Positions 7,422-27,542 of a stretch of 64,000 nucleotides of DNA are shown in pieces. The stretch lies in the sequence record LC819007.1. One strand, 5' to 3'. The position numbers and the translations under genes were made by a program. How positions within the stretch are numbered: the first letter of the stretch is position 1; each line of letters opens with the position of its first letter. The notes beneath the pieces were generated by a model. It ran no database searches. It had not been told where the DNA came from and saw only the letters and a program-made list of their open reading frames with translations.

Positions 7422-7967
7422 TTACGCGCACGCAATACCGGCCAGTTCGAATACCTGCTTGGGTTCTTGTCCGTCGCAGTAAATGAGTTCAAAGGCTGCA
7501 TGGACGTCCTTGGTTCTCACCGAGGGGTCAGGCAGGGCGTTCTTGCGAGCCAGCATGTGCCAGAGAGCGCCGCTATACGGCTTCCGGCCCGATGCCATCT
7601 CGGTCAAGAATTCGGTGGCTTGCTCGTTGAACTGTTGGTTCTTCGAGTGCGTGAAGAGTTGCAGCACAGCGGGCGACTCCATCTGCGCTTCGCAATAGGC
7701 GCGGCAGACTTCGTAGAGTTCAGCCATGTCTTCCTTGGAGCCAGTGAACGTCATATCGTCCCGGCTGCCGAAGCAAGTGCTGGTGGTTCGGATCTCGGTC
7801 TCGCTGACCAACGCCATACGACTGCCGAACGCCAGTTCTGCGTCGACGATATACTTCAGTGCCTTAGCCGGTGTGATCTGACGATCCTCGCAAACGCTAA
7901 CATTGCTGCCGTCTGCGTTACGGCCTTGACCTTCGGGGTACGTGCGGGTGAAATAATGGCGGATCAT
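7422..7967 (-). CDS. hypothetical protein
   Basis: 181-aa ORF, AAGGAG RBS, promoter-like motif 40 nt upstream. Confidence 0.75.
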   Translation of the reverse strand: MIRHYFTRTYPEGQGRNADGSNVSVCEDRQITPAKALKYIVDAELAFGSRMALVSETEIRTTSTCFGSRDDMTFTGSKEDMAELYEVCRAYCEAQMESPAVLQLFTHSKNQQFNEQATEFLTEMASGRKPYSGALWHMLARKNALPDPSVRTKDVHAAFELIYCDGQEPKQVFELAGIACA

Positions 7968-8007
7968 TTCTTGTTCTCCTTATGGATACACTGGATGTCT
8001 TCCCTTG

Positions 8008-8020
8008 GTAATATGTTGCC
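8008..8020 (-). promoter_or_regulatory. putative early phage promoter (GGCAACATATTAC)
   Basis: Shares CATATTAC core with other copies; lies just downstream of the 8039-8071 terminator. Confidence 0.5.
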
Positions 8021-8038
8021 AGCGAATTTTCCATTAAG

Positions 8039-8071
8039 GGCATAAAGGCCAGGGTCACCCCCGGCCTTTAT
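8039..8071 (-). terminator. intrinsic terminator-like hairpin
   Basis: ATAAAGGCC...GGCCTTTAT stem with GGCATAAA end. Confidence 0.7.
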
Positions 8072-8073
8072 TC

Positions 8074-8307
8074 TTACATGAACCTGTGGTCCATTGGAGG
8101 AGGAAGCATCGTCAGCACGTCTTCCACAAGCTTCTGTGGATGCCATTGATACGCCTCGACCAACAGTCGAACGTGACGTTCCGTCGTCTCCGGGTCCCAG
8201 TCACGCGAGGCCGGGAAACGGGCCATCACTACCCGACGCGCCAACTTCTCGAACTCTTCGAACGGAAACTGGATCGGCTTGATCTGCGTCGGCTTAGGGG
8301 AGCTCAT
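8074..8307 (-). CDS. small hypothetical protein (MSSPKPTQIKPIQFPFEEF...)
   Basis: C-terminal part of track ORF 8074-8409; 14-nt overlap with the upstream gene. Confidence 0.55.
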   Translation of the reverse strand: MSSPKPTQIKPIQFPFEEFEKLARRVVMARFPASRDWDPETTERHVRLLVEAYQWHPQKLVEDVLTMLPPPMDHRFM

Positions 8308-9217
8308 ACCAGGCCCAGCCACCGTGGTTCGAAGCGTCGACTTCCTGCCACTTCGGGTGCGTACCCGTCTTGTCCTGGATGTTCCCGAGCTTCGCATCGA
8401 AGCACGCACGCATCGACTTGAGCTTCGTGATCATTTCCTGCGAACGGTACACGCGGGTCACGAGCAACGCTTGCGTCGCTACCGACTGCACGCCCGAAGC
8501 GTTCAGGTTCTGATACGAGAGCTTCGCCGGGAAGTACAGCTTCGAGGCCGACAGCTTGTTCACGAGGTCTTGCGGAATCGGCAGGATCTTGAACGTGTTC
8601 GGCAACGTCTTCACCATCGGGTGCGGCGCACCGCCTACGACGAGAATCGCATCGAGCTCACCCGAAAGCAGCTTGGCTTTGAGCGTATCATTGTCCGCCA
8701 CCGGCAAGACCTTGAAACCGAGACCGGAGTTCGCAGCCACGACATTGGCAGACGCGATCGAGCCACCCACGGCGCCGACGTTACGACCCTTCAGATCGGA
8801 GAGCGAGTTGAACTGGACTTCCTTGCCGCCGATCAGGCCGCCGATATAGCCGCCTTCCTTCTTGACGTCAGCCCGCGCGATGAAGTGCAGTTCTTCCGGG
8901 TGCAGTGCGATCAGCGTCTTGATATTGGCCACTTTCGAGGCGTCGACACGACGTTCGAATTCGAGCATGTCCGACTGCACGATGGCCGCGTTGACCTGAT
9001 TGCCGATCAGCAGGTTCTTGTTGTCGATGCCGCCCTTCGTTTCCTTCTCGGCCCAGTCGCCGTTGCCGCACATCGCGTTCAGTTCGCCGAACATCACGCT
9101 GTAGGTGGAGCCGCCCTTCTTGTCGCCCGTAGCGACGATGATCTTCTCTTGCGCCACTGCGTTCATGCAGATTGCAACTGCGACCATCGCCAGGATGGAT
9201 TTGAACAAGTTCTTCAC
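8294..9217 (-). CDS. TAXI-family-like (type II periplasmic) solute-binding protein with signal peptide
   Basis: Sec signal ending AVA-Q; IIVATGDKKGGSTY, T.GG.DN..LL.GNQVNAAIVQSD, LHPEELHFIAR, SLSDLKGRNV..G..GS, ELDAILVVGGAP, V.SVAT.ALLV motifs. Confidence 0.75.
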   Translation of the reverse strand: MKNLFKSILAMVAVAICMNAVAQEKIIVATGDKKGGSTYSVMFGELNAMCGNGDWAEKETKGGIDNKNLLIGNQVNAAIVQSDMLEFERRVDASKVANIKTLIALHPEELHFIARADVKKEGGYIGGLIGGKEVQFNSLSDLKGRNVGAVGGSIASANVVAANSGLGFKVLPVADNDTLKAKLLSGELDAILVVGGAPHPMVKTLPNTFKILPIPQDLVNKLSASKLYFPAKLSYQNLNASGVQSVATQALLVTRVYRSQEMITKLKSMRACFDAKLGNIQDKTGTHPKWQEVDASNHGGWAWYELP

Positions 9218-9247
9218 TTCTTTTTCCTTCGAGTTGTGGTGAGGTAA

Positions 9248-9406
9248 TTACAGCTTGAAATTCGAGTTGCTGCTGCTCGAATCATTCGACGGCGCGGCTT
9301 CCGTGGCCGGTGCTGCTTCCGTCGGGGCTTGCGACCGGTTGGTCGCGAAGTACAGCGCGCCGAGAACGACGGCCATCACGATAAGACCGATGATACTGGC
9401 TTTCAT
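9248..9406 (-). CDS. small single-pass membrane protein (MKASIIGLIVMAVVLGALYFATNRSQAP...)
   Basis: Manually translated 52-aa ORF, AAGGAG RBS, ATGA overlap with upstream stop; not in ORF track. Confidence 0.7.
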   Translation of the reverse strand: MKASIIGLIVMAVVLGALYFATNRSQAPTEAAPATEAAPSNDSSSSNSNFKL

Positions 9407-10200
9407 GCGAGCTCCTTCACGGGTTGGAGAATGCTACCCAGCTGCACACGGCCATCCGGCGTGTACGAGACCTGGTGCGTCGACGACGTCGTCTTGATCT
9501 GTTCCTTCGCGTACGACTCGTCGGTCAGCGCCATGCGCAGGTGCGCGAGCGACTGAGCGTGTTCGCGGTCGATCTTGTCGAAGGCGATGGATTCCTTGAA
9601 CTTGGCCATCACGTCGTTGCCGGAGTTCAGTGCCTTGCCGGTTGCATTACCCAGCTGAGCGAGTTCGTACTTGGCAATGTACTTGTCGACGTTACGGCTG
9701 AACTGGCCATGCTTCTCGCGAGCGTCCTTAAACTGGTCGACACGGAAGACGAGCAGCGCTTCGTATTCACGCAGGTTCTGCATCGACTCTTCGGCTTCTT
9801 CCGGATACTCCTTGACGAGCTTCTTCGTCTTCTGGCTGAAGAGTTCCACCGCCGCGACCTGTTGTTCCAGCATGCCGCGTGCGTCTTCCAGTGCCTGCGC
9901 CCGTTCCTGGCGCTGGGCGATCAGGGTAGTACACGGATCACGTTCGACGACTTCCTTCACGGCCTTGTACTTCAGGTTCGTGAGCCACGTGGAGAAGGCT
10001 GGCTGTAGCGCCAGTGCGACGCCGCCAATCACGAAGGCAGCGATCAGGCCAATCAGACCTTGAATGACCAGATAGATCGTGGGTGCGACAACAACTGCAA
10101 CTCCTCCAACGATCCCGACCTGTATCAGTCGTTTGAATCTTTGTTTTTTGTCCATGATAACGGATGATAGGTTAGCGGATTGAGCGTTCTGTCTACTCAA
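9403..10200 (-). CDS. two-TM plus long coiled-coil protein (PspA-like architecture)
   Basis: TTG start 5 nt after GGAGG; two hydrophobic helices then heptad-rich helical region. Confidence 0.7.
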   Translation of the reverse strand: MSRQNAQSANLSSVIMDKKQRFKRLIQVGIVGGVAVVVAPTIYLVIQGLIGLIAAFVIGGVALALQPAFSTWLTNLKYKAVKEVVERDPCTTLIAQRQERAQALEDARGMLEQQVAAVELFSQKTKKLVKEYPEEAEESMQNLREYEALLVFRVDQFKDAREKHGQFSRNVDKYIAKYELAQLGNATGKALNSGNDVMAKFKESIAFDKIDREHAQSLAHLRMALTDESYAKEQIKTTSSTHQVSYTPDGRVQLGSILQPVKELA

Positions 10201-10320
10201 ACCATCCTCCCGCTCTGTTAAAAAACCACTACGACGGCAAAAAAAAGAGAGGGGTCGCTGACCCCTCAGTCTGCCCGGTGGGAGGAGACCACACCGGCTA
10301 CCCCTCTCAAACCTGGACAG

Positions 10321-10680
10321 TTATGTTGGATCGATCATGAACTTCAGACCGGGAACGCGCAAAGCTTCATCCAGCGTCATGTTGGTATTCACCCCCATGG
10401 CGTTCAACACCTTGCGCATGTCCTGTTCTTCTGCTTCGTCCGCGACGGCTTCTTCATCCACCCACGGCTCAACCACTGTTTGTACCGTGACCTTCTGAGT
10501 GAACACCACACGTTGATTGCAGTGTTCGCAATACACCTGCCGCTGCGGATCGATCAACAACTCGATCACCTCTTCGGGCGCTGACTCCAGCGAGTAAATC
10601 AGGTACGCACCCTGACCTACTTGTTCACTGGTTTCATGCTTGCAATGCGGGCAGTCAAACTTCACGGTATCGTAAGCCAC
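10321..10680 (-). CDS. zinc-ribbon-like protein
   Basis: CPHC...CEHC; GTG start with GGAG RBS. Confidence 0.7.
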   Translation of the reverse strand: MAYDTVKFDCPHCKHETSEQVGQGAYLIYSLESAPEEVIELLIDPQRQVYCEHCNQRVVFTQKVTVQTVVEPWVDEEAVADEAEEQDMRKVLNAMGVNTNMTLDEALRVPGLKFMIDPT

Positions 10681-17889: not shown

Positions 17890-18334
17890 TGCTATCCTCG
17901 CTCTTATGCTCGATGCTCCAGCGCTTGCGCTTACTAGCGTCGATGATAATGCCCAGATCCCGCTGATCTTCGGCCTGCATGATTTCCAACGAGGTAAGTT
18001 TTCGCACGGGCGACCAGGTCGTTTCATCCGCCTGCTCGAAAAGCCAGTGGACATACTGGTCGCCGTCAAAGCACACCGCCATGTTGGGGTTGTCTTGCAC
18101 GCGAATCAGGTTGGTCGCGCCCTGTGCATCCCCGACTACCCGTTGTCGGAGCCACTGGCCTTCCTCTTCCTGGTTCAGACGTACCGAACAAGTAGCGAAG
18201 TCACACAGCGGCCCATCAACATGTACACAACTGCCACGTGCTTTGTCCTTGTAGACACTGCAGTGGCGTACGGGATCGTCAGGTCGCGACAGGAGTTCCT
18301 TCAGCGGCTTTAGCAGCTGCTTCAGCTTCTGCAT
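17873..18334 (-). CDS. hypothetical Cys-containing protein
   Basis: 153-aa ORF filling the gap; overlaps the ligase 3' end by 56 nt. Confidence 0.55.
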   Translation of the reverse strand: MQKLKQLLKPLKELLSRPDDPVRHCSVYKDKARGSCVHVDGPLCDFATCSVRLNQEEEGQWLRQRVVGDAQGATNLIRVQDNPNMAVCFDGDQYVHWLFEQADETTWSPVRKLTSLEIMQAEDQRDLGIIIDASKRKRWSIEHKSEDSNEVSA

Positions 18335-19589
18335 CTTTGGCCTCCAGCCATGCGTTGGAAATGATCTTCATGCTTTCGCCAGTCACCTCGCTCTTGGCAA
18401 CCAGCCCTTCACGCGGACGCTTCGGTTCGAAATGACCCGGACCATCGGCCAGCTTGAGCAGGTCTTTGATCGAGCCAGTGAGTGGAGTGCCCGACGACAC
18501 CAGCGGAACGTACTTGATGCCGATCGTTTCACACAGCCGGCGTGCTTCGGGCGGAGCCATCATCTCGTTGCCGTTCGTGTAGACACGGTAGCAATAGAAC
18601 TCATTGTTAGGAGCGAACTCTGCCCCGCCATTGAAGTTCGGCCCGACCATCTCACCTTGCAGCGAGACTTTCTTGCCAACGACAGCGCTAGCCGCCAGCA
18701 CGAGCGCCGACATTCCGCGTTCCTTGAAGTAGCGCACGATCGGCACCGTCTTCGGATCGTACTGAGTGACCCAGCGCGGCACATAGATCTCGGCACCCGC
18801 CAGCTTGCGCGGGATATAGCGGAGCCAGCCCGCCAGATACACGAGCAGCTGTTCCTTGAACGAGTACGGGATGGGTTCCAGACGCAGTGCGAAATTGCGC
18901 TGGGCTGCGCCGACATCGTTGGAGTCCGCTGCCGTGTAGAACGTGGTCGATTCGCCGTCGAGCTTGACCGACAGTTCCACCGGCTCTTCGTCCTTGACCA
19001 GGCGAGCATGCAGTGCCGAGACGTTCTGTACGCGCTGCTCTTCCGACTTCACCAGATGCGTCGGCCAGGGCAGCAGACCGTCGACGATGATGTCCTTGAT
19101 CAGCCAGTTACGAAGACGCCAGATCAGCTTGCGGGTCGCCGTCATGTTCCGAGGCTCGTTGCTTGCTTCCTTGTACAGCTTCGCTTCTGCGGGCGAGACG
19201 TACTTCAGCACACCGATGTGTTCGGTGTAGTCGTAGTCCGCCTTAGCTGTCGAACCGATGCGACCCAGACGATCCAACGACAATACCAATCCTTGCGAGC
19301 GCACGCCGCGCAGCTTGAGCGTCTTGATCACTGCGAACTGCTTGCCTTCGTGTTCGACCACGCGCAGGCGCGACTGATCGAAGTCAGCCCACAGTTCGTG
19401 ATCCAGCGGAATCGCTGAATCGATCTCGAAATACAGCGCCAGATCCCCAGCGTTGTACTCACCCTTGGGAACGATACATTCCCAGCCACCGACGACCGCT
19501 ATTTCCAGACGGTCTGCCTTCGGAATCGCTTTGATCTCGTCGATGCGCACCGCACGAGCCAGCTTCCGAGTTTCTTCTTTTACCAGCAT
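18279..19589 (-). CDS. ATP-dependent RNA ligase (Rnl2/DRB0094-like) with N-terminal OB-like domain
   Basis: Motif I KLDGES, III LQGEMVG, IIIa FYCYRV, IV REGLV, V KIIS; N-terminal IPKADRLE.AVVGGWECIV..GEY..GD.ALYFEIDS. Confidence 0.9.
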   Translation of the reverse strand: MLVKEETRKLARAVRIDEIKAIPKADRLEIAVVGGWECIVPKGEYNAGDLALYFEIDSAIPLDHELWADFDQSRLRVVEHEGKQFAVIKTLKLRGVRSQGLVLSLDRLGRIGSTAKADYDYTEHIGVLKYVSPAEAKLYKEASNEPRNMTATRKLIWRLRNWLIKDIIVDGLLPWPTHLVKSEEQRVQNVSALHARLVKDEEPVELSVKLDGESTTFYTAADSNDVGAAQRNFALRLEPIPYSFKEQLLVYLAGWLRYIPRKLAGAEIYVPRWVTQYDPKTVPIVRYFKERGMSALVLAASAVVGKKVSLQGEMVGPNFNGGAEFAPNNEFYCYRVYTNGNEMMAPPEARRLCETIGIKYVPLVSSGTPLTGSIKDLLKLADGPGHFEPKRPREGLVAKSEVTGESMKIISNAWLEAKDAEAEAAAKAAEGTPVAT

Positions 19590-22504: not shown

Positions 22505-24334
22505 TTAAGCTGCCTTCTTCAGCAGGCGATCGGTCACTTCTGCGAGCGTCGTTTCGTCGACGAACTGGCTGTTGGTGTAGCGCAGACGCAGTTCACCCGA
22601 ATGCGTCGGGATTTCTTCGATCGAGAACTTCTGCTCTTCTTGCTTGACGAAGTCGCCCTTGTCGTTCTTCACGACACGCAGGAAGCCCTTCGCCGACTTC
22701 TTGTTCGTGACGCCTTCGGTCTTCGGTGCCTTGAAGAGTTCGATCAGTTCGTCTTCGACCTGCACGGCCGTTGCCTTCACTGCGAAGCCGAGCGTGTCAC
22801 GCGTGTTGTGCTGGTACGTGTACGAGCCGATACCGAACACCGTGTTGCAGGACGCGAAGCCCTTGAAGGCCAGACGACGCAGGATTTCGTCAGCGCGCTC
22901 GACCGTGATCGAGTCACCGTAGATCAGGCCGACGCGTTCGTGCAGAACCTTGTAGCCCTTGTTCGTGAGCGTGCCACCGAAGATGTCCCACAGTGCTTCC
23001 ACGGCACCCTTTTCCTGGATCGTCAGCGGAGCGAACGAAACCGGCACGATCAGGAAACCGTTGACTTCGCCCGTCGCGAATTCAGCGTACGCCGGCACAC
23101 CGCCCGCCGAGGTCTTGTTGACCGCGCGCACCAGATTGCCCGCGCCGAAGTCGACGAGGTATTCCGATTGCGGATCACGCATTTCTTCGGTGCTGTTCGT
23201 GATGCGAATGAAGTCGTCCTTCGAATGGATGTAACGACCTGCCAGCACCTCGACAGGATCGCCCGAGTCCGGACGGTACACCACCTTCGCGAAACCGTTC
23301 TCGTCCGGCGTACGTGCGAGGATTTCTTCCTTCAGGTTCGCCGAGTCGGCCAGCGTGTTCCAGAAGTCGAAGCTGTCGGCCACGAGCGAGATGATCCCCG
23401 TCGGATGTTTGCGCGTGATGACGTCACGGATGAATTCGCGTTCGCCATGTGCGCGCAGTTCTTCCACGTTCGGCTCGTTGCCCTGCAAACGCATGACATC
23501 GACGAAAAGCTTTTTCATCAGCTTGCTGACGTTGAACAGAATGTTCGACGTAGCCACCGCGTGTTCCGTTGCCACCACCGAAGTAGCCACGAATTCCTTC
23601 TCGACGTTCGCGCCGTACATGTCTTCGACGTAGTCGATCGCCGGCAGCGTGTCCGTGCCCTTGAACACGACCAGGTGGCCCGAGCCAACCCGTGCTGCAT
23701 CTTCCGGACCCGACAGACCGCGGAATGCGAAGTCATGGCCCTGCACGTCGACGAATGAACGGTCGACGCCCGTGACGTCTGCCCAGTATTCGAACGTGCG
23801 ACGGTATTCGTACGCGATCGTGGCGTTCGTGGACATCTTCCACAGCAGCGCCGACATCAGCGTTTCGAGGTAGTTCACGAGCCAGAAGAAGTCCGGATGC
23901 GTGTTGTACGCCACGTACACCGGCACATTCATGTTCACGCGTTCGCCTTCCGGCAGCGAGAGCACGTTGATCGGCAAGTAGCCGAGGTCGTGCAGTTGTT
24001 CGAAGCACGTGACATCGACGCGGTTATCGCCGAGGTAGTGCTTCATGCGGCGAGCGTAGCGGCGGCAGACGACGTCCTTCGGCTTCGAGAAGAACGAGTT
24101 GTGCCACAGGCCGTTGATCTCGCGCAGCGTGCCCTGCATGCCGAAGAACACCATCTTGCCGTCCCAGAAACGCGACTTCGACTTGTTGTCGATGAACAGG
24201 CGATCCGAGCGGAACGTACCGTTGCTGTACGTGAATGTCGTGCCGTCCGGGTAGAGCGGGCGGTGACCGACCTTGTAGCCGTCGGTAGTGGTGGGAGCGA
24301 ACAGGTGGAACGAAGTATCTTGAGTTTGGTGCAT
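22505..24334 (-). CDS. nadV: nicotinamide phosphoribosyltransferase family protein (NAMPT/NadV; likely Namat of NARP1)
   Basis: TDGYKVGH, HDFAFRG, SVVATEHAV, SLVADSFD, RPDSGDP, IYGDSIT, FGIGS..YQ..TRDTLGFAVKAT, KKSAKG motifs. Confidence 0.95.
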   Translation of the reverse strand: MHQTQDTSFHLFAPTTTDGYKVGHRPLYPDGTTFTYSNGTFRSDRLFIDNKSKSRFWDGKMVFFGMQGTLREINGLWHNSFFSKPKDVVCRRYARRMKHYLGDNRVDVTCFEQLHDLGYLPINVLSLPEGERVNMNVPVYVAYNTHPDFFWLVNYLETLMSALLWKMSTNATIAYEYRRTFEYWADVTGVDRSFVDVQGHDFAFRGLSGPEDAARVGSGHLVVFKGTDTLPAIDYVEDMYGANVEKEFVATSVVATEHAVATSNILFNVSKLMKKLFVDVMRLQGNEPNVEELRAHGEREFIRDVITRKHPTGIISLVADSFDFWNTLADSANLKEEILARTPDENGFAKVVYRPDSGDPVEVLAGRYIHSKDDFIRITNSTEEMRDPQSEYLVDFGAGNLVRAVNKTSAGGVPAYAEFATGEVNGFLIVPVSFAPLTIQEKGAVEALWDIFGGTLTNKGYKVLHERVGLIYGDSITVERADEILRRLAFKGFASCNTVFGIGSYTYQHNTRDTLGFAVKATAVQVEDELIELFKAPKTEGVTNKKSAKGFLRVVKNDKGDFVKQEEQKFSIEEIPTHSGELRLRYTNSQFVDETTLAEVTDRLLKKAA

Positions 24335-24361
24335 GATGGTATTTTCTTCTTGCTGTTATGT

Positions 24362-25261
24362 CTAAACGTTGAACCAGTGAACGCGACGCAGTTGCTCGTC
24401 GTTGCGGAAGCGATCGCTCGACAGACGGAATTCGGTGGTGCAGTCCGGGTGGAACGAGTCGGTCGTGTAGATGCGATCGAACACGTCGAGCACAGGCTCC
24501 AAGCCGTACGAGAAGATTCCGTGCGTAACGAACAGGCTCAGTTCCTTGCAGCCTTCGTCGCGCAGAATACGGCCCAGCTGGATGAACGTGCGGCCGCCGT
24601 CGCAGATGTCGTCAACTACAATCAGGTTTTTACCTGCAACGTTACCGTCCAGCTTGGTCTCCGTGATTTCCATCGTCTCTAGGTTACGCGTCTTGGTCGC
24701 GGTGACGTACGGAATGTCGAGCTTCTCGGAGAGCGCCTTGATCTTCTTGACGGCGCCCGCATCGGGAGCTACCAGCAACAGATCCTGGGTGTTAAGGCTC
24801 AGAATCTGTCGCTCGACGATTTGGGCCAGGAAAGACTGTTGCGTCGACACGAAACTGCGATTGATCGCGGCGGCTGCGACGTCGCTGTGCGGATCGAGCA
24901 ACGACACCGATTCGAAATTCATGGCGTTGACCAGCTGCGCGAACATGCTCAGCGACAACGCTTCGCCCGAGTTGCAGACACGGTCTTGACGAGCGTACGG
25001 CAGGTACGGAATGAACGCGCTGATTCTGGCGACCGGCGCAATGCGACGCAGTGCATCCACCGTCATGAACATCGCCATCGCGTCGTCGGAGTTCGTAATG
25101 TTCGCCGTCAGTTCGACGGCAGCTCCATTGAGCACCATCCGAAGTAGGTTATTGATAACCTGTTCCGGCAAGCGGATATTCACTTCACCGCCTTTGAAGA
25201 TCTTCACTTCGACCGGCAGCTGCTGGTGATGCACGCTGTTGCCAATACTAACCTTAATCAT
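24362..25261 (-). CDS. prs: ribose-phosphate pyrophosphokinase family protein (likely Adps of NARP1)
   Basis: FKGGEVNI, PYLPYARQDR, LDPHS, APDAGA..K, VVDDICDGGRTF, LFVTHGIFS motifs. Confidence 0.92.
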   Translation of the reverse strand: MIKVSIGNSVHHQQLPVEVKIFKGGEVNIRLPEQVINNLLRMVLNGAAVELTANITNSDDAMAMFMTVDALRRIAPVARISAFIPYLPYARQDRVCNSGEALSLSMFAQLVNAMNFESVSLLDPHSDVAAAAINRSFVSTQQSFLAQIVERQILSLNTQDLLLVAPDAGAVKKIKALSEKLDIPYVTATKTRNLETMEITETKLDGNVAGKNLIVVDDICDGGRTFIQLGRILRDEGCKELSLFVTHGIFSYGLEPVLDVFDRIYTTDSFHPDCTTEFRLSSDRFRNDEQLRRVHWFNV

Positions 25262-26216: not shown

Positions 26217-26571
26217 AACCTTCTCCTTCTAACGTTTCACCGCTAAAGCGCCACTCCACGAACTTGGCATCCATGCGATTCTTGAAATGGAACACCGGTG
26301 AGAGCACATTGTCAAACTTCTTCATCGGCATGCCGTGCAGAAACGACCACGAGAACGCCGTGATGCCCTTATCGCGCAGATGCTGGAGCAGTTCGTCGAT
26401 CCACAGATCCAGCGGTCGCGTTTCACTGGTGATGGGCGGGAAGATCACCGTGTACCAGCCGTATGGTGTCGGCTGATCGAATACCGGTTTCTCTTCCTTT
26501 TCCTTGCCCTGCTTTGCCGGTGTTTTTACCGGCGCTTCCTTTGGCTTGTTCACTCGCACCTCAAACTGCAA
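26209..26571 (-). CDS. hypothetical protein
   Basis: 120-aa ORF overlapping both neighbours by a few nt. Confidence 0.65.
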   Translation of the reverse strand: MQFEVRVNKPKEAPVKTPAKQGKEKEEKPVFDQPTPYGWYTVIFPPITSETRPLDLWIDELLQHLRDKGITAFSWSFLHGMPMKKFDNVLSPVFHFKNRMDAKFVEWRFSGETLEGEGCV

Positions 26572-27451
26572 ACGGATACTGGATGGCCGGGTGGAACTCC
26601 GTGTACTTCACTTCGAAGTCATTCACCGTCACCCACGTTTCGACGTCTTCCAACGTCTTGATATCCGGGTTGATGTCGATGGTCGGCTCAGCCAGGATCG
26701 GGCGGTCCAGTTGTTCCTGCACCAGTTCCAGCTGATTGCCGTAGATGTGGCAGTTCACGTTGCGGTGATACGCGAACTTCGGGTTCTTGCCCGTGATCTG
26801 CGCCATCAAACGCAACAGCAGCCACACCTGCACCATGTTCGCGACCGTCCCCAGCGGCCAGTCCGACGAACGCTGTGTCGAGTTCAGATACAGGTCGTTG
26901 CCGAGCAGCGAGAACTGGTGTTCGTACATGCACGGACGCAGACAGCCGAGATGGAACATGCCCGGATTCCAGAACGTGATGATTTCACCACGATCGTCAA
27001 CGCCCTTTTTCAGGTTGTTGTAGACCTTCTTGAAAAGATCCACGCTACCCCGCGCGTCTTCCAGCGTGAGCGGTTCAGTCGGCCAGTTCTTGGCGACAGC
27101 GCCGTAGATCAAGCCGAGGTCGTCTTCGCCTTGGCGATTCGGGTTGGCCAGCCACGAAGCATTTTCGTTGGCATTGGCATCCCACGACTTCGTGCCGAGC
27201 GCACGCATCTGGGCGGCTGAGGTCACGCCCTTGATATACCCCAGCATCTCAGCGATCGGCAGCTTCACCGGTGCTTTGCGCGTCGTGACGATCGGTGCCT
27301 TGTTGCTGGTGGCGTCGTACGTCATGTCGATGTTGATAATCGTCCGGCAGTTGATGCCAGTACGGGCATTCGGCAAGTCAACGCCGTGCTCGTAAATGTG
27401 CTGCAAACCTGCGAGGTACTGCATTTCTGCGCGATCGATAGCGTGGGACAT
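26561..27451 (-). CDS. thyA: thymidylate synthase
   Basis: RTG, P.VTTRK, LGLIYG, WNP, LRPC (catalytic Cys), QRSSD.PLG...N, HIYGNQ motifs; start at MSHAIDR. Confidence 0.95.
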   Translation of the reverse strand: MSHAIDRAEMQYLAGLQHIYEHGVDLPNARTGINCRTIINIDMTYDATSNKAPIVTTRKAPVKLPIAEMLGYIKGVTSAAQMRALGTKSWDANANENASWLANPNRQGEDDLGLIYGAVAKNWPTEPLTLEDARGSVDLFKKVYNNLKKGVDDRGEIITFWNPGMFHLGCLRPCMYEHQFSLLGNDLYLNSTQRSSDWPLGTVANMVQVWLLLRLMAQITGKNPKFAYHRNVNCHIYGNQLELVQEQLDRPILAEPTIDINPDIKTLEDVETWVTVNDFEVKYTEFHPAIQYPFAV

Positions 27452-27542
27452 GGCTGTGATGACAAAAAAATAAAAGGTTGGAATTCGGGAGAAGCAGCGC
27501 GAAGCTGCTCCTCTCCACATACAACCTTCAAGGCGGTAATTT

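Follow-up and report, generated by a model that had tools for sequence, protein, structure and literature searches.

Layout of the locus

The window analysed here is a stretch of 64,000 nucleotides from sequence record LC819007.1; its bases 7900-10400 are 100% identical to positions 193900-196400 of the same record, the genome of Ralstonia phage FLC4-3B. This jumbo phage of 291 kb infects R. pseudosolanacearum and is a relative of RP12, itself termed phiKZ-related (PMC11530567). On the minus strand of the window lie three genes, gp207, gp206 and gp205, predicted to encode a coiled-coil membrane protein, a small single-pass membrane protein and a secreted binding protein with the fold of the TAXI family; a fourth gene, gp204, follows. 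All four are labelled hypothetical proteins in GenBank, and the PHROG families matched by the first three have no assigned function (gp207, phrog_27316, E-value (E) 8.6e-73; gp206, phrog_37009, E 2.8e-17; gp205 family, E 3.4e-75). The three linked genes are a real and previously undescribed envelope device. No paper describing the three-gene module or the coiled-coil family was found in the literature; the binding proteins of RP12 and RP31 are listed in PMC5468394.

The transcription unit is bordered on its 5' side by an intrinsic terminator that ends gp208, with an 8-bp GC-rich stem and a run of eight T (10249..10267, minus strand; terminator scan and sequence). Next comes gp207, which occupies 9403..10200 when started at a TTG codon (265 amino acids) or 9403..10155 when started at the annotated ATG (250 amino acids). 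A Shine-Dalgarno motif, GGGAGGA, is read at 10205..10211, 4 nucleotides ahead of the TTG, and no comparable motif precedes the ATG at 10155, so that the 265-residue form is plausible and is favoured here. The stop codon of gp207 and the start codon of gp206 (9248..9406; 52 amino acids) share four nucleotides (ATGA), and 30 nucleotides (9218-9247) separate gp206 from gp205 (8294..9217; 307 amino acids). An earlier sequence-only reading of this DNA had pointed to three tightly coupled genes with this overlap and this gap, and all are present on the minus strand. It had also proposed that a 52-residue single-pass gene had been missed by the open reading frame (ORF) track; this gene is real, given its PHROG match and the gp206-like ORFs found at the equivalent position in more than 20 loci.

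Predicted architecture of the three proteins

The gp207 protein consists of a two-helix membrane hairpin, a conserved motif of the NPIET type (DPCTT here) and a three-helix bundle. A hydrophobic span of about 52 residues, made of two helices and a tight turn, was present in all 77 homologues sampled; the N-terminus is net-positive in 58 of them, and the 15 residues that follow the span are net-positive in 70. This positive-inside charge pattern indicates that the bundle is cytoplasmic, and the topology predicted from it is N-in/C-in, with the coiled coil on the cytoplasmic side. In an AlphaFold2 model (predicted local distance difference test, pLDDT, of 71), helices 74-116, 118-176 and 182-222 form an antiparallel three-helix bundle, the structural neighbours of which are generic bundles (SipB, BAR, F-BAR) at Z 8-10, with Foldseek E-values of 0.07 or weaker.

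The family of gp207 is large and phage-enriched: a profile search against 1.84 billion representatives retrieved 745 clusters at E <= 0.001 and 285 at E <= 1e-30, nearly all of them about 250 residues long and unannotated. Searched against PDB sequences, the family profile gave noise only. Searches of the ESM Atlas returned unnamed clusters only, and in a structure search of BFVD the RP12 orthologue was the one useful match. No PADLOC defence model was matched, the best E-values (0.016-0.017) falling on membrane or coiled-coil stretches only. Pfam matches among the 77 homologues amount to scattered noise (CEP63 in 8, HBL in 6, PspA_IM30 in 4, a holin family in 4).

The sequence-only reading had ascribed a PspA-like architecture to this protein. 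PspA/IM30/Vipp1 and ESCRT-III proteins do resemble it in their long antiparallel helices at the inner membrane; however, PspA proteins are peripheral and have no membrane hairpin, whereas the hydrophobic span is present in all 77 gp207 homologues sampled. The Snf7 match (PF03357) reached E 0.013-0.02, far under the cut-off, and PF04012 matched 4 of the 77 homologues with a best E of 0.0012. Structure searches gave a similar picture: Vipp1 came at rank 18 (E 0.36) against the PDB and did not appear among the top 50 VIA-align rows, and the Snf7 and PspA phage proteins of BFVD were found at E > 0.3, a phage PspA at rank 21 (E 0.59). As neither sequence nor structure searches returned a specific match, we rejected kinship with PspA/ESCRT-III, and the protein is better described as an integral membrane hairpin with a generic three-helix bundle.

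The holin matches raise the question of whether the two-helix protein could be holin-like or antiholin-like, its activity being set by the periplasmic binding protein. These matches are weak and concern PF07332 in 4 of the 77 homologues. In phage T4, a periplasmic protein can indeed set the timing of lysis via the holin. However, a cytoplasmic bundle of 180 residues is atypical of holins, and in one bacterial chromosome the module stands alone as a cassette. Moreover, no endolysin or spanin gene is linked to it in the loci that were read, apart from one faint spanin match on the opposite strand (locus L010). A role in lysis timing is quite improbable.

Homologues of gp206 are 44-66 residues long. 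Their N-terminus is basic and leads into a hydrophobic segment (about 20 residues), after which come a linker rich in Ser, Pro and Ala and a short conserved C-terminal motif (NFKL in FLC4-3B). A small-x-small cleavage site is mostly absent from the hydrophobic segment in the sequences read, so that we take the segment to be an uncleaved anchor and read the protein as probably single-pass, with 25-35 residues extending as a tail into the periplasm. The terminal motif varies by clade (NFKL, GYKL, KYKF, FKNFSM, FKTLKIN, MKSLRIE, YSGLGK and others), and motif classes track the clades of the binding-protein tree. Such tracking could also arise if the small protein were a secreted pro-peptide whose C-terminal motif is the ligand of gp205, in an arbitrium-like communication system; the layout of the small protein, in which a variable linker joins the hydrophobic N-terminus to a clade-specific C-terminal motif, resembles that of AimP-type pro-peptides. 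Yet the segment fits an uncleaved anchor, the pocket of the binding protein is near-invariant whereas the motif varies, and in one bacterial genome (G037, described below) the anchor and linker are fused directly to a binding domain. We find peptide communication scarcely credible.

Taken with the hairpin of gp207, the anchor of gp206 brings the number of membrane helices to three per unit. One may imagine that the hairpin and the small anchor oligomerise into a path for a ligand delivered by the binding protein, and hence into a new type of transporter or channel: Gly and small residues abound in the helices, which would permit oligomer packing, and the three-gene stoichiometry is like that of tripartite transporters. 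There are just three helices per unit, however, almost devoid of polar or charged residues, and Pfam and NCBIfam searches found no similarity to any transporter family. This explanation is very unlikely.

The third protein, gp205, begins with a Sec signal peptide (residues 1-23, ending in AVA ahead of QE). It passes the Pfam cut-off for NMT1_3 (PF16868, E 2.3e-9, 37.7 bits for a cut-off of 27), and scores 56.8 bits (E 1.6e-15) with the NCBIfam TAXI model TIGR02122, below its cut-off of 84.35. Its AlphaFold2 model, computed with 40 homologues as input, has a pLDDT of 93.6. The top seven Foldseek rows, which correspond to six PDB entries (4DDD, 1US4, 9IBO, 8U79, 8S4J and 9IBP), are all TAXI proteins (E 2.5e-16 to 5.9e-13, template modelling (TM) score 0.60-0.68), and the next class (LAO, Thi5) appears at about 1e-9 or weaker. 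The earlier assignment of gp205 as a signal-peptide-bearing protein of TAXI type was thus well founded.

In the TAXI protein VcGluP, the binding of glutamate is dominated by Y45 and Q93, in a site that E125, G156 and G203 help to line (PMC11574862). We aligned the profile of the gp205 family, of which 40 members were considered, to 8S4J and 1US4, with a register uncertain by one residue at Y45/Y46. The equivalent residues in gp205 are Y39, Q81, E108, G152 and G196; all are conserved in 40 of 40 members except Q81, which is found in 36. The position of VcGluP D157 is occupied by an invariant Ser (S153, listed in the pocket), and that of the variable Y200 by Val or Ile. Like VcGluP (8S4J/9IBO) and TtGluBP (1US4/8U79), gp205 has a two-lobe fold, a Sec signal peptide and a Pfam NMT1_3 match above cut-off, and it keeps the Tyr, Gln and Glu that hold the ligand's amino group. 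It differs from them by its low identity to solved TAXI proteins (17-19% only) and by its place under the NCBIfam cut-off. Unlike classic TAXI proteins, it also has an invariant Cys50/Cys272 pair, a Gly-rich insertion at about 117-134 and a conserved aromatic C-terminal extension (GTHPKWQ...W.WY), all specific to its family, as well as its link to the coiled-coil and small proteins. The conserved pocket suggests that gp205 is a divergent TAXI-fold protein that is probably ligand-competent, the ligand most likely being an amino acid of the glutamate type.

Linkage, distribution and variant loci

The genes for the coiled-coil, small and binding proteins were linked in all 26 loci compared. These loci come from 4 isolated jumbo phages of Ralstonia and Achromobacter, from IMG/VR, metagenome and Logan contigs, and from 2 bacterial chromosomes; phage RsoM2USA was left out. 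The order coiled-coil, small, binding protein is kept in 25 of the 26, and the metagenome contig L043 has the order small, binding protein, coiled-coil. Every binding-protein locus with enough flanking DNA has the coiled-coil gene, among them 11 out of 11 IMG/VR loci, the metagenome loci and the contigs sampled, and in most of them a small gene is recognisable as well; one further contig, without DNA, shows the same gene order. By our own count from coordinates, about 17 of 24 loci show the 4-nucleotide overlap of the coiled-coil and small genes. Over the 26 loci, the distance matrix of the coiled-coil protein is correlated with that of the binding protein (r 0.70; 0 of 2000 permutations in a Mantel test). 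The sequence-only reading had taken the genes for one unit and co-conservation had been set beforehand as the test of it; linkage in 26 of 26 loci and correlated distances bear this out.

Among 50,697 GenBank phage records, the coiled-coil protein was found only in RP12, RP31, phiRSL1, Motura, FLC4-3B and FLC1-1B, and these six phages also carry the binding protein. All three genes are present in RP12, Motura and phiRSL1. In the last of these, the coiled-coil gene (ORF096, BLASTP E 4e-13) is parted from the other two by three small ORFs. A divergent version exists in RsoM2USA, whose gp54 bears only a weak similarity to the coiled-coil proteins (probability 53% in hhalign) and which we therefore count as analogous and possibly related; with it, the isolated phage lineages that carry the set number five.

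The module is also found in bacteria. One copy, at locus L009, lies in the chromosome of a betaproteobacterial metagenome-assembled genome (MAG), with ordinary metabolic and GGDEF genes around it; another, at L007, occurs in Achromobacter genomes, where its surroundings consist of small ORFs and XRE regulators. On the tree, the binding proteins of both loci cluster with the copy of the Achromobacter phage Motura (support 98/96), which fits an exchange between phage and host. Bacterial copies are sporadic: in 401 genomes of the order of G001, a betaproteobacterial MAG carrying the module, the coiled-coil protein gave 2 clear matches and 1 marginal one, and a pattern scan of genome contigs found one locus only, in the same MAG as L009.

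Several variant loci alter the periplasmic part. In the bacterial genome G037, the coiled-coil gene is followed after 20 nucleotides by a gene for a single protein of 377 residues, in which an N-terminal anchor and a low-complexity linker are joined to an SBP_bac_3 domain (polar-amino-acid type) and a LysM domain. Two coiled-coil members of 567-574 residues, P0163 (L035:5001-6725) and P0242, are extended beyond a signal-anchor by an exported, beta-rich domain (about 320 residues), for which Pfam, NCBIfam and PDB sequence searches found no match. Another member, P0257, extends further at its cytoplasmic end, and no binding-protein gene lies close to it. These variants all fit one plan, in which a cytoplasmic bundle and membrane helices would be combined with a swappable, membrane-held periplasmic domain.

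The spot directly after the binding-protein gene is a local hypervariable site. In FLC4-3B it holds gp204 (8074..8307, minus strand; 77 amino acids, GenBank annotation), which shares 14 nucleotides with the 3' end of gp205, as the sequence-only reading had noticed, and is therefore expected to be co-transcribed with it. The gp204 protein is 53% identical to its counterpart in FLC1-1B (L066:3411-3638), a phage with a genome reported to be 99.0% identical to that of FLC4-3B, and FLC1-1B has an additional small gene at this site. No gp204 was found downstream of the binding protein in RP12, phiRSL1 or Motura, and we rejected it as a member of the module on account of this absence; it is still a real gene. 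A fourth conserved gene was rejected as well, the downstream proteins of 181-185 residues of FLC4-3B, L009 and L007 not being alike. Just past the gp204 stop codon, a hairpin (AAAGGCC...GGCCTTT; 8044..8069, minus strand) read from the sequence is the probable 3' end of the unit. Of the shared terminator that had been proposed, the hairpin is there, though with a weak U-tract; the terminator scan called nothing on the minus strand at 8069-8044 and picked up the plus-strand form alone.

Phage enrichment, sporadic occurrence in bacteria, the clustering of bacterial copies with that of Motura, and the hypervariable gene directly downstream are all features that could be expected of a guard of the envelope. 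The module would then act in superinfection exclusion or in the sensing of cell-wall damage: gp205 would recognise either a piece of peptidoglycan or some component of a phage trying to enter, and the coiled coil would pass this on or stiffen the membrane. The stem peptide of peptidoglycan contains D-Glu, and the G037 variant bears a peptidoglycan-binding LysM domain. A layout with a two-helix and a small single-pass membrane protein also recalls Imm and Sp of phage T4. On the other hand, a near-invariant pocket of the amino-acid-binding type is unexpected in a protein aimed at variable phage parts, the PADLOC defence models gave no match, and the one weak match to ZorA (E 0.009) is at noise level. 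We consider such a guard function unlikely.

Uptake or sensing

In TRAP systems, a TAXI protein works with a QM permease. None was found for gp205, either adjoining it or elsewhere in the phage genome. More generally, no fused DctQ-DctM permease adjoins the module in any locus read, and searches of five complete phage genomes with the binding-protein gene, among them the 291-kb genome of FLC4-3B, turned up neither DctM nor GltS. The lack of a TRAP membrane subunit in the window, noted by the sequence-only reading, thus extends to the whole FLC4-3B genome; a cognate permease encoded elsewhere, which that reading had considered as evidence against its proposal, was not found in the five phage genomes. 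The bacterial genome G037 has a DctP-type TRAP operon 3.6 kb away from the module, with its own DctP binding protein.

A permease could nevertheless be provided by the host. Phage-borne binding proteins that use host permeases do exist, the PstS of cyanophages being an example. Here, gp205 would capture glutamate or a related acid for a host TAXI-TRAP QM permease or a GltS-type carrier, and the two other proteins would serve to tether or position it. The conserved ligand pocket and the genomic context speak for this. Of 201 genomes sampled from the order of G001, 60 encode a TAXI-type fused permease that scores over the cut-off, and in G001 the gene for such a permease, frameshifted, is found well away from the module. 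In the other 141, however, no fused permease scored over the cut-off, so that some hosts may offer a permease for the phage protein to use, but this cannot be a general rule.

A TAXI protein is also able to serve a carrier outside the TRAP family, and the closest precedent is the pairing of TAXI and GltS (BP0403/BP0402) in Bordetella pertussis (PMC12344293). This system resembles the phage module by the use of a TAXI protein outside TRAP, by translational coupling to the membrane partner, by the existence of natural fusions and by its betaproteobacterial setting. The GltS partner is, however, a full Na+/glutamate symporter of 10 or more helices, without counterpart in the five phage genomes, whereas the phage partners offer two plus one membrane helices and a large cytoplasmic coiled coil.

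The neighbours of the module are often metabolic. Directly downstream of it in RP12 (L002:5993-7518) lie ORF192 and ORF191, with a ModA-like SBP_bac_11 domain (E 3e-19) and a ModB-like permease domain, BPD_transp_1 (E 1.4e-8); a domain search of the two ORFs found no ATPase domain, and they may form a partial molybdate-type importer. RP12 also has molybdenum-cofactor genes (PMC5468394). In Motura (L004:5959-8784), the module is followed by genes for homospermidine synthase and glutathionylspermidine synthase, and on a 524-kb IMG/VR contig (L028:7438-8364) by an arginase-family gene, again a polyamine context. In phiRSL1 and at locus L065, genes for the salvage of nicotinamide adenine dinucleotide (NAD) are close to the module.

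In the window, the same minus-strand block as the module contains genes for an RNA ligase (PF09414 and an OB-fold domain; 18279-19589) and a thymidylate synthase (26561-27520), which places the module in a region of nucleotide and metabolic functions rather than among virion genes. The window also encodes, on the minus strand, a protein of 299 residues similar to phosphoribosyl pyrophosphate (PRPP) synthetase (24362-25261) and, adjoining it, a nicotinate phosphoribosyltransferase (NAPRTase)-family protein of 609 residues (22505-24334; PF04095, E 2.4e-31). This pair (22505-25261) resembles the NAD+ reconstitution pathway of phages, in which two enzymes (Adps and Namat in the NARP1 type) counter NAD-depleting defence. 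NAPRTase-family genes are also found in RP12, phiRSL1 and RsoM2USA. A consistent link between this family and the module was considered and rejected: the distance is 5 kb or less only in phiRSL1 and L065, a fusion occurs in P0219, the gene is 14 kb away in FLC4-3B, and there is none in Motura.

While the metabolic neighbours and the host permeases speak for nutrient scavenging, it leaves unexplained the strict co-inheritance of a cytoplasmic coiled-coil protein of 250 residues and the coupling to the small protein; in addition, the free periplasmic binding proteins of Gram-negative bacteria require no tether. Scavenging for a host carrier is a possible, though on balance rather unlikely, account of the module.

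The composition of the module is well supported. It is a self-contained set of three envelope proteins, spread mainly by large phages of Betaproteobacteria: a membrane hairpin with a cytoplasmic bundle, a coupled single-pass protein of 45-65 residues with a disordered tail, and a secreted, disulfide-bearing protein of TAXI fold, whose pocket retains the residues that contact the amino-acid moiety of glutamate in characterised TAXI proteins. That it contains no transporter subunit is equally well supported. The strictness of the linkage, together with the coupling to a protein with a cytoplasmic bundle, argues for the membrane proteins, not a carrier, as the working partners of the binding protein, and we infer that the module is most likely a binding-protein-dependent sensor rather than an uptake system.

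Since the bundle is cytoplasmic, any contact with the binding protein would have to pass through the membrane helices, most likely via the periplasmic tail of the small protein. This tail appears to be the only periplasmic part able to reach gp205, a view that the G037 fusion supports; together with P0163 and P0242, this fusion was counted in favour of a tethered periplasmic domain. The sequence-only reading had envisaged that the binding protein docks directly on the coiled coil, which the positive-inside rule makes unlikely. The following scheme can be proposed. The small protein would hold the binding protein at the membrane with its tail, while packing its anchor on the gp207 hairpin. Once a periplasmic ligand resembling glutamate or an amino acid is bound, this contact would be altered, and the three membrane helices would transmit the change to the bundle in the cytoplasm; the bundle would then act on some phage or host target. 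We favour such a relay across the envelope tentatively, with somewhat less than even confidence. More specifically, the cue might be glutamate from lysed neighbours or a D-Glu cell-wall fragment, and the response a tuning of infection timing, exclusion or metabolism; this extension of the scheme is doubtful.

Four points weigh against a signalling role. In the gp207 protein, no output or enzymatic domain was recognisable by Pfam, NCBIfam, PDB-profile or PADLOC searches. The fold matches of its model at Z 8-10 lie below the level that implies kinship for helical proteins. The fusions P0163 and P0242 could be artefacts of gene calling. Finally, the module often lies among metabolic genes, which fits nutrient acquisition equally well.

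Bacterial sensors of this general type are well known: in LuxP-LuxQ, TorT-TorS, ChvE-VirA and MBP-Tar, a periplasmic binding protein signals its occupancy to an inner-membrane protein with a helical cytoplasmic part. LuxQ, TorS, VirA and Tar, however, have a periplasmic domain of their own and a kinase or methyl-accepting output, whereas gp207 has neither, and the periplasmic contact would here come from a small tail protein.

TAXI proteins are usually seen as parts of TRAP systems, and a second membrane partner, GltS, was proposed only in 2025. The module would represent a third context for these proteins, a mainly viral one, with partners that are unable to be a conventional carrier. Were it to serve in scavenging only, it would still be a neat case of auxiliary phage genes that come with an unusual tether. 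If the signalling role is true, it would be the first binding-protein-dependent signalling device belonging to a virus. In either case, three function-unassigned PHROG families and a coiled-coil family of about 745 clusters receive names and a testable set of partners. FLC4-3B-like phages are studied for biocontrol, and the module points to a link between periplasm and cytoplasm during the infection of plant-pathogenic Ralstonia by jumbo phages.

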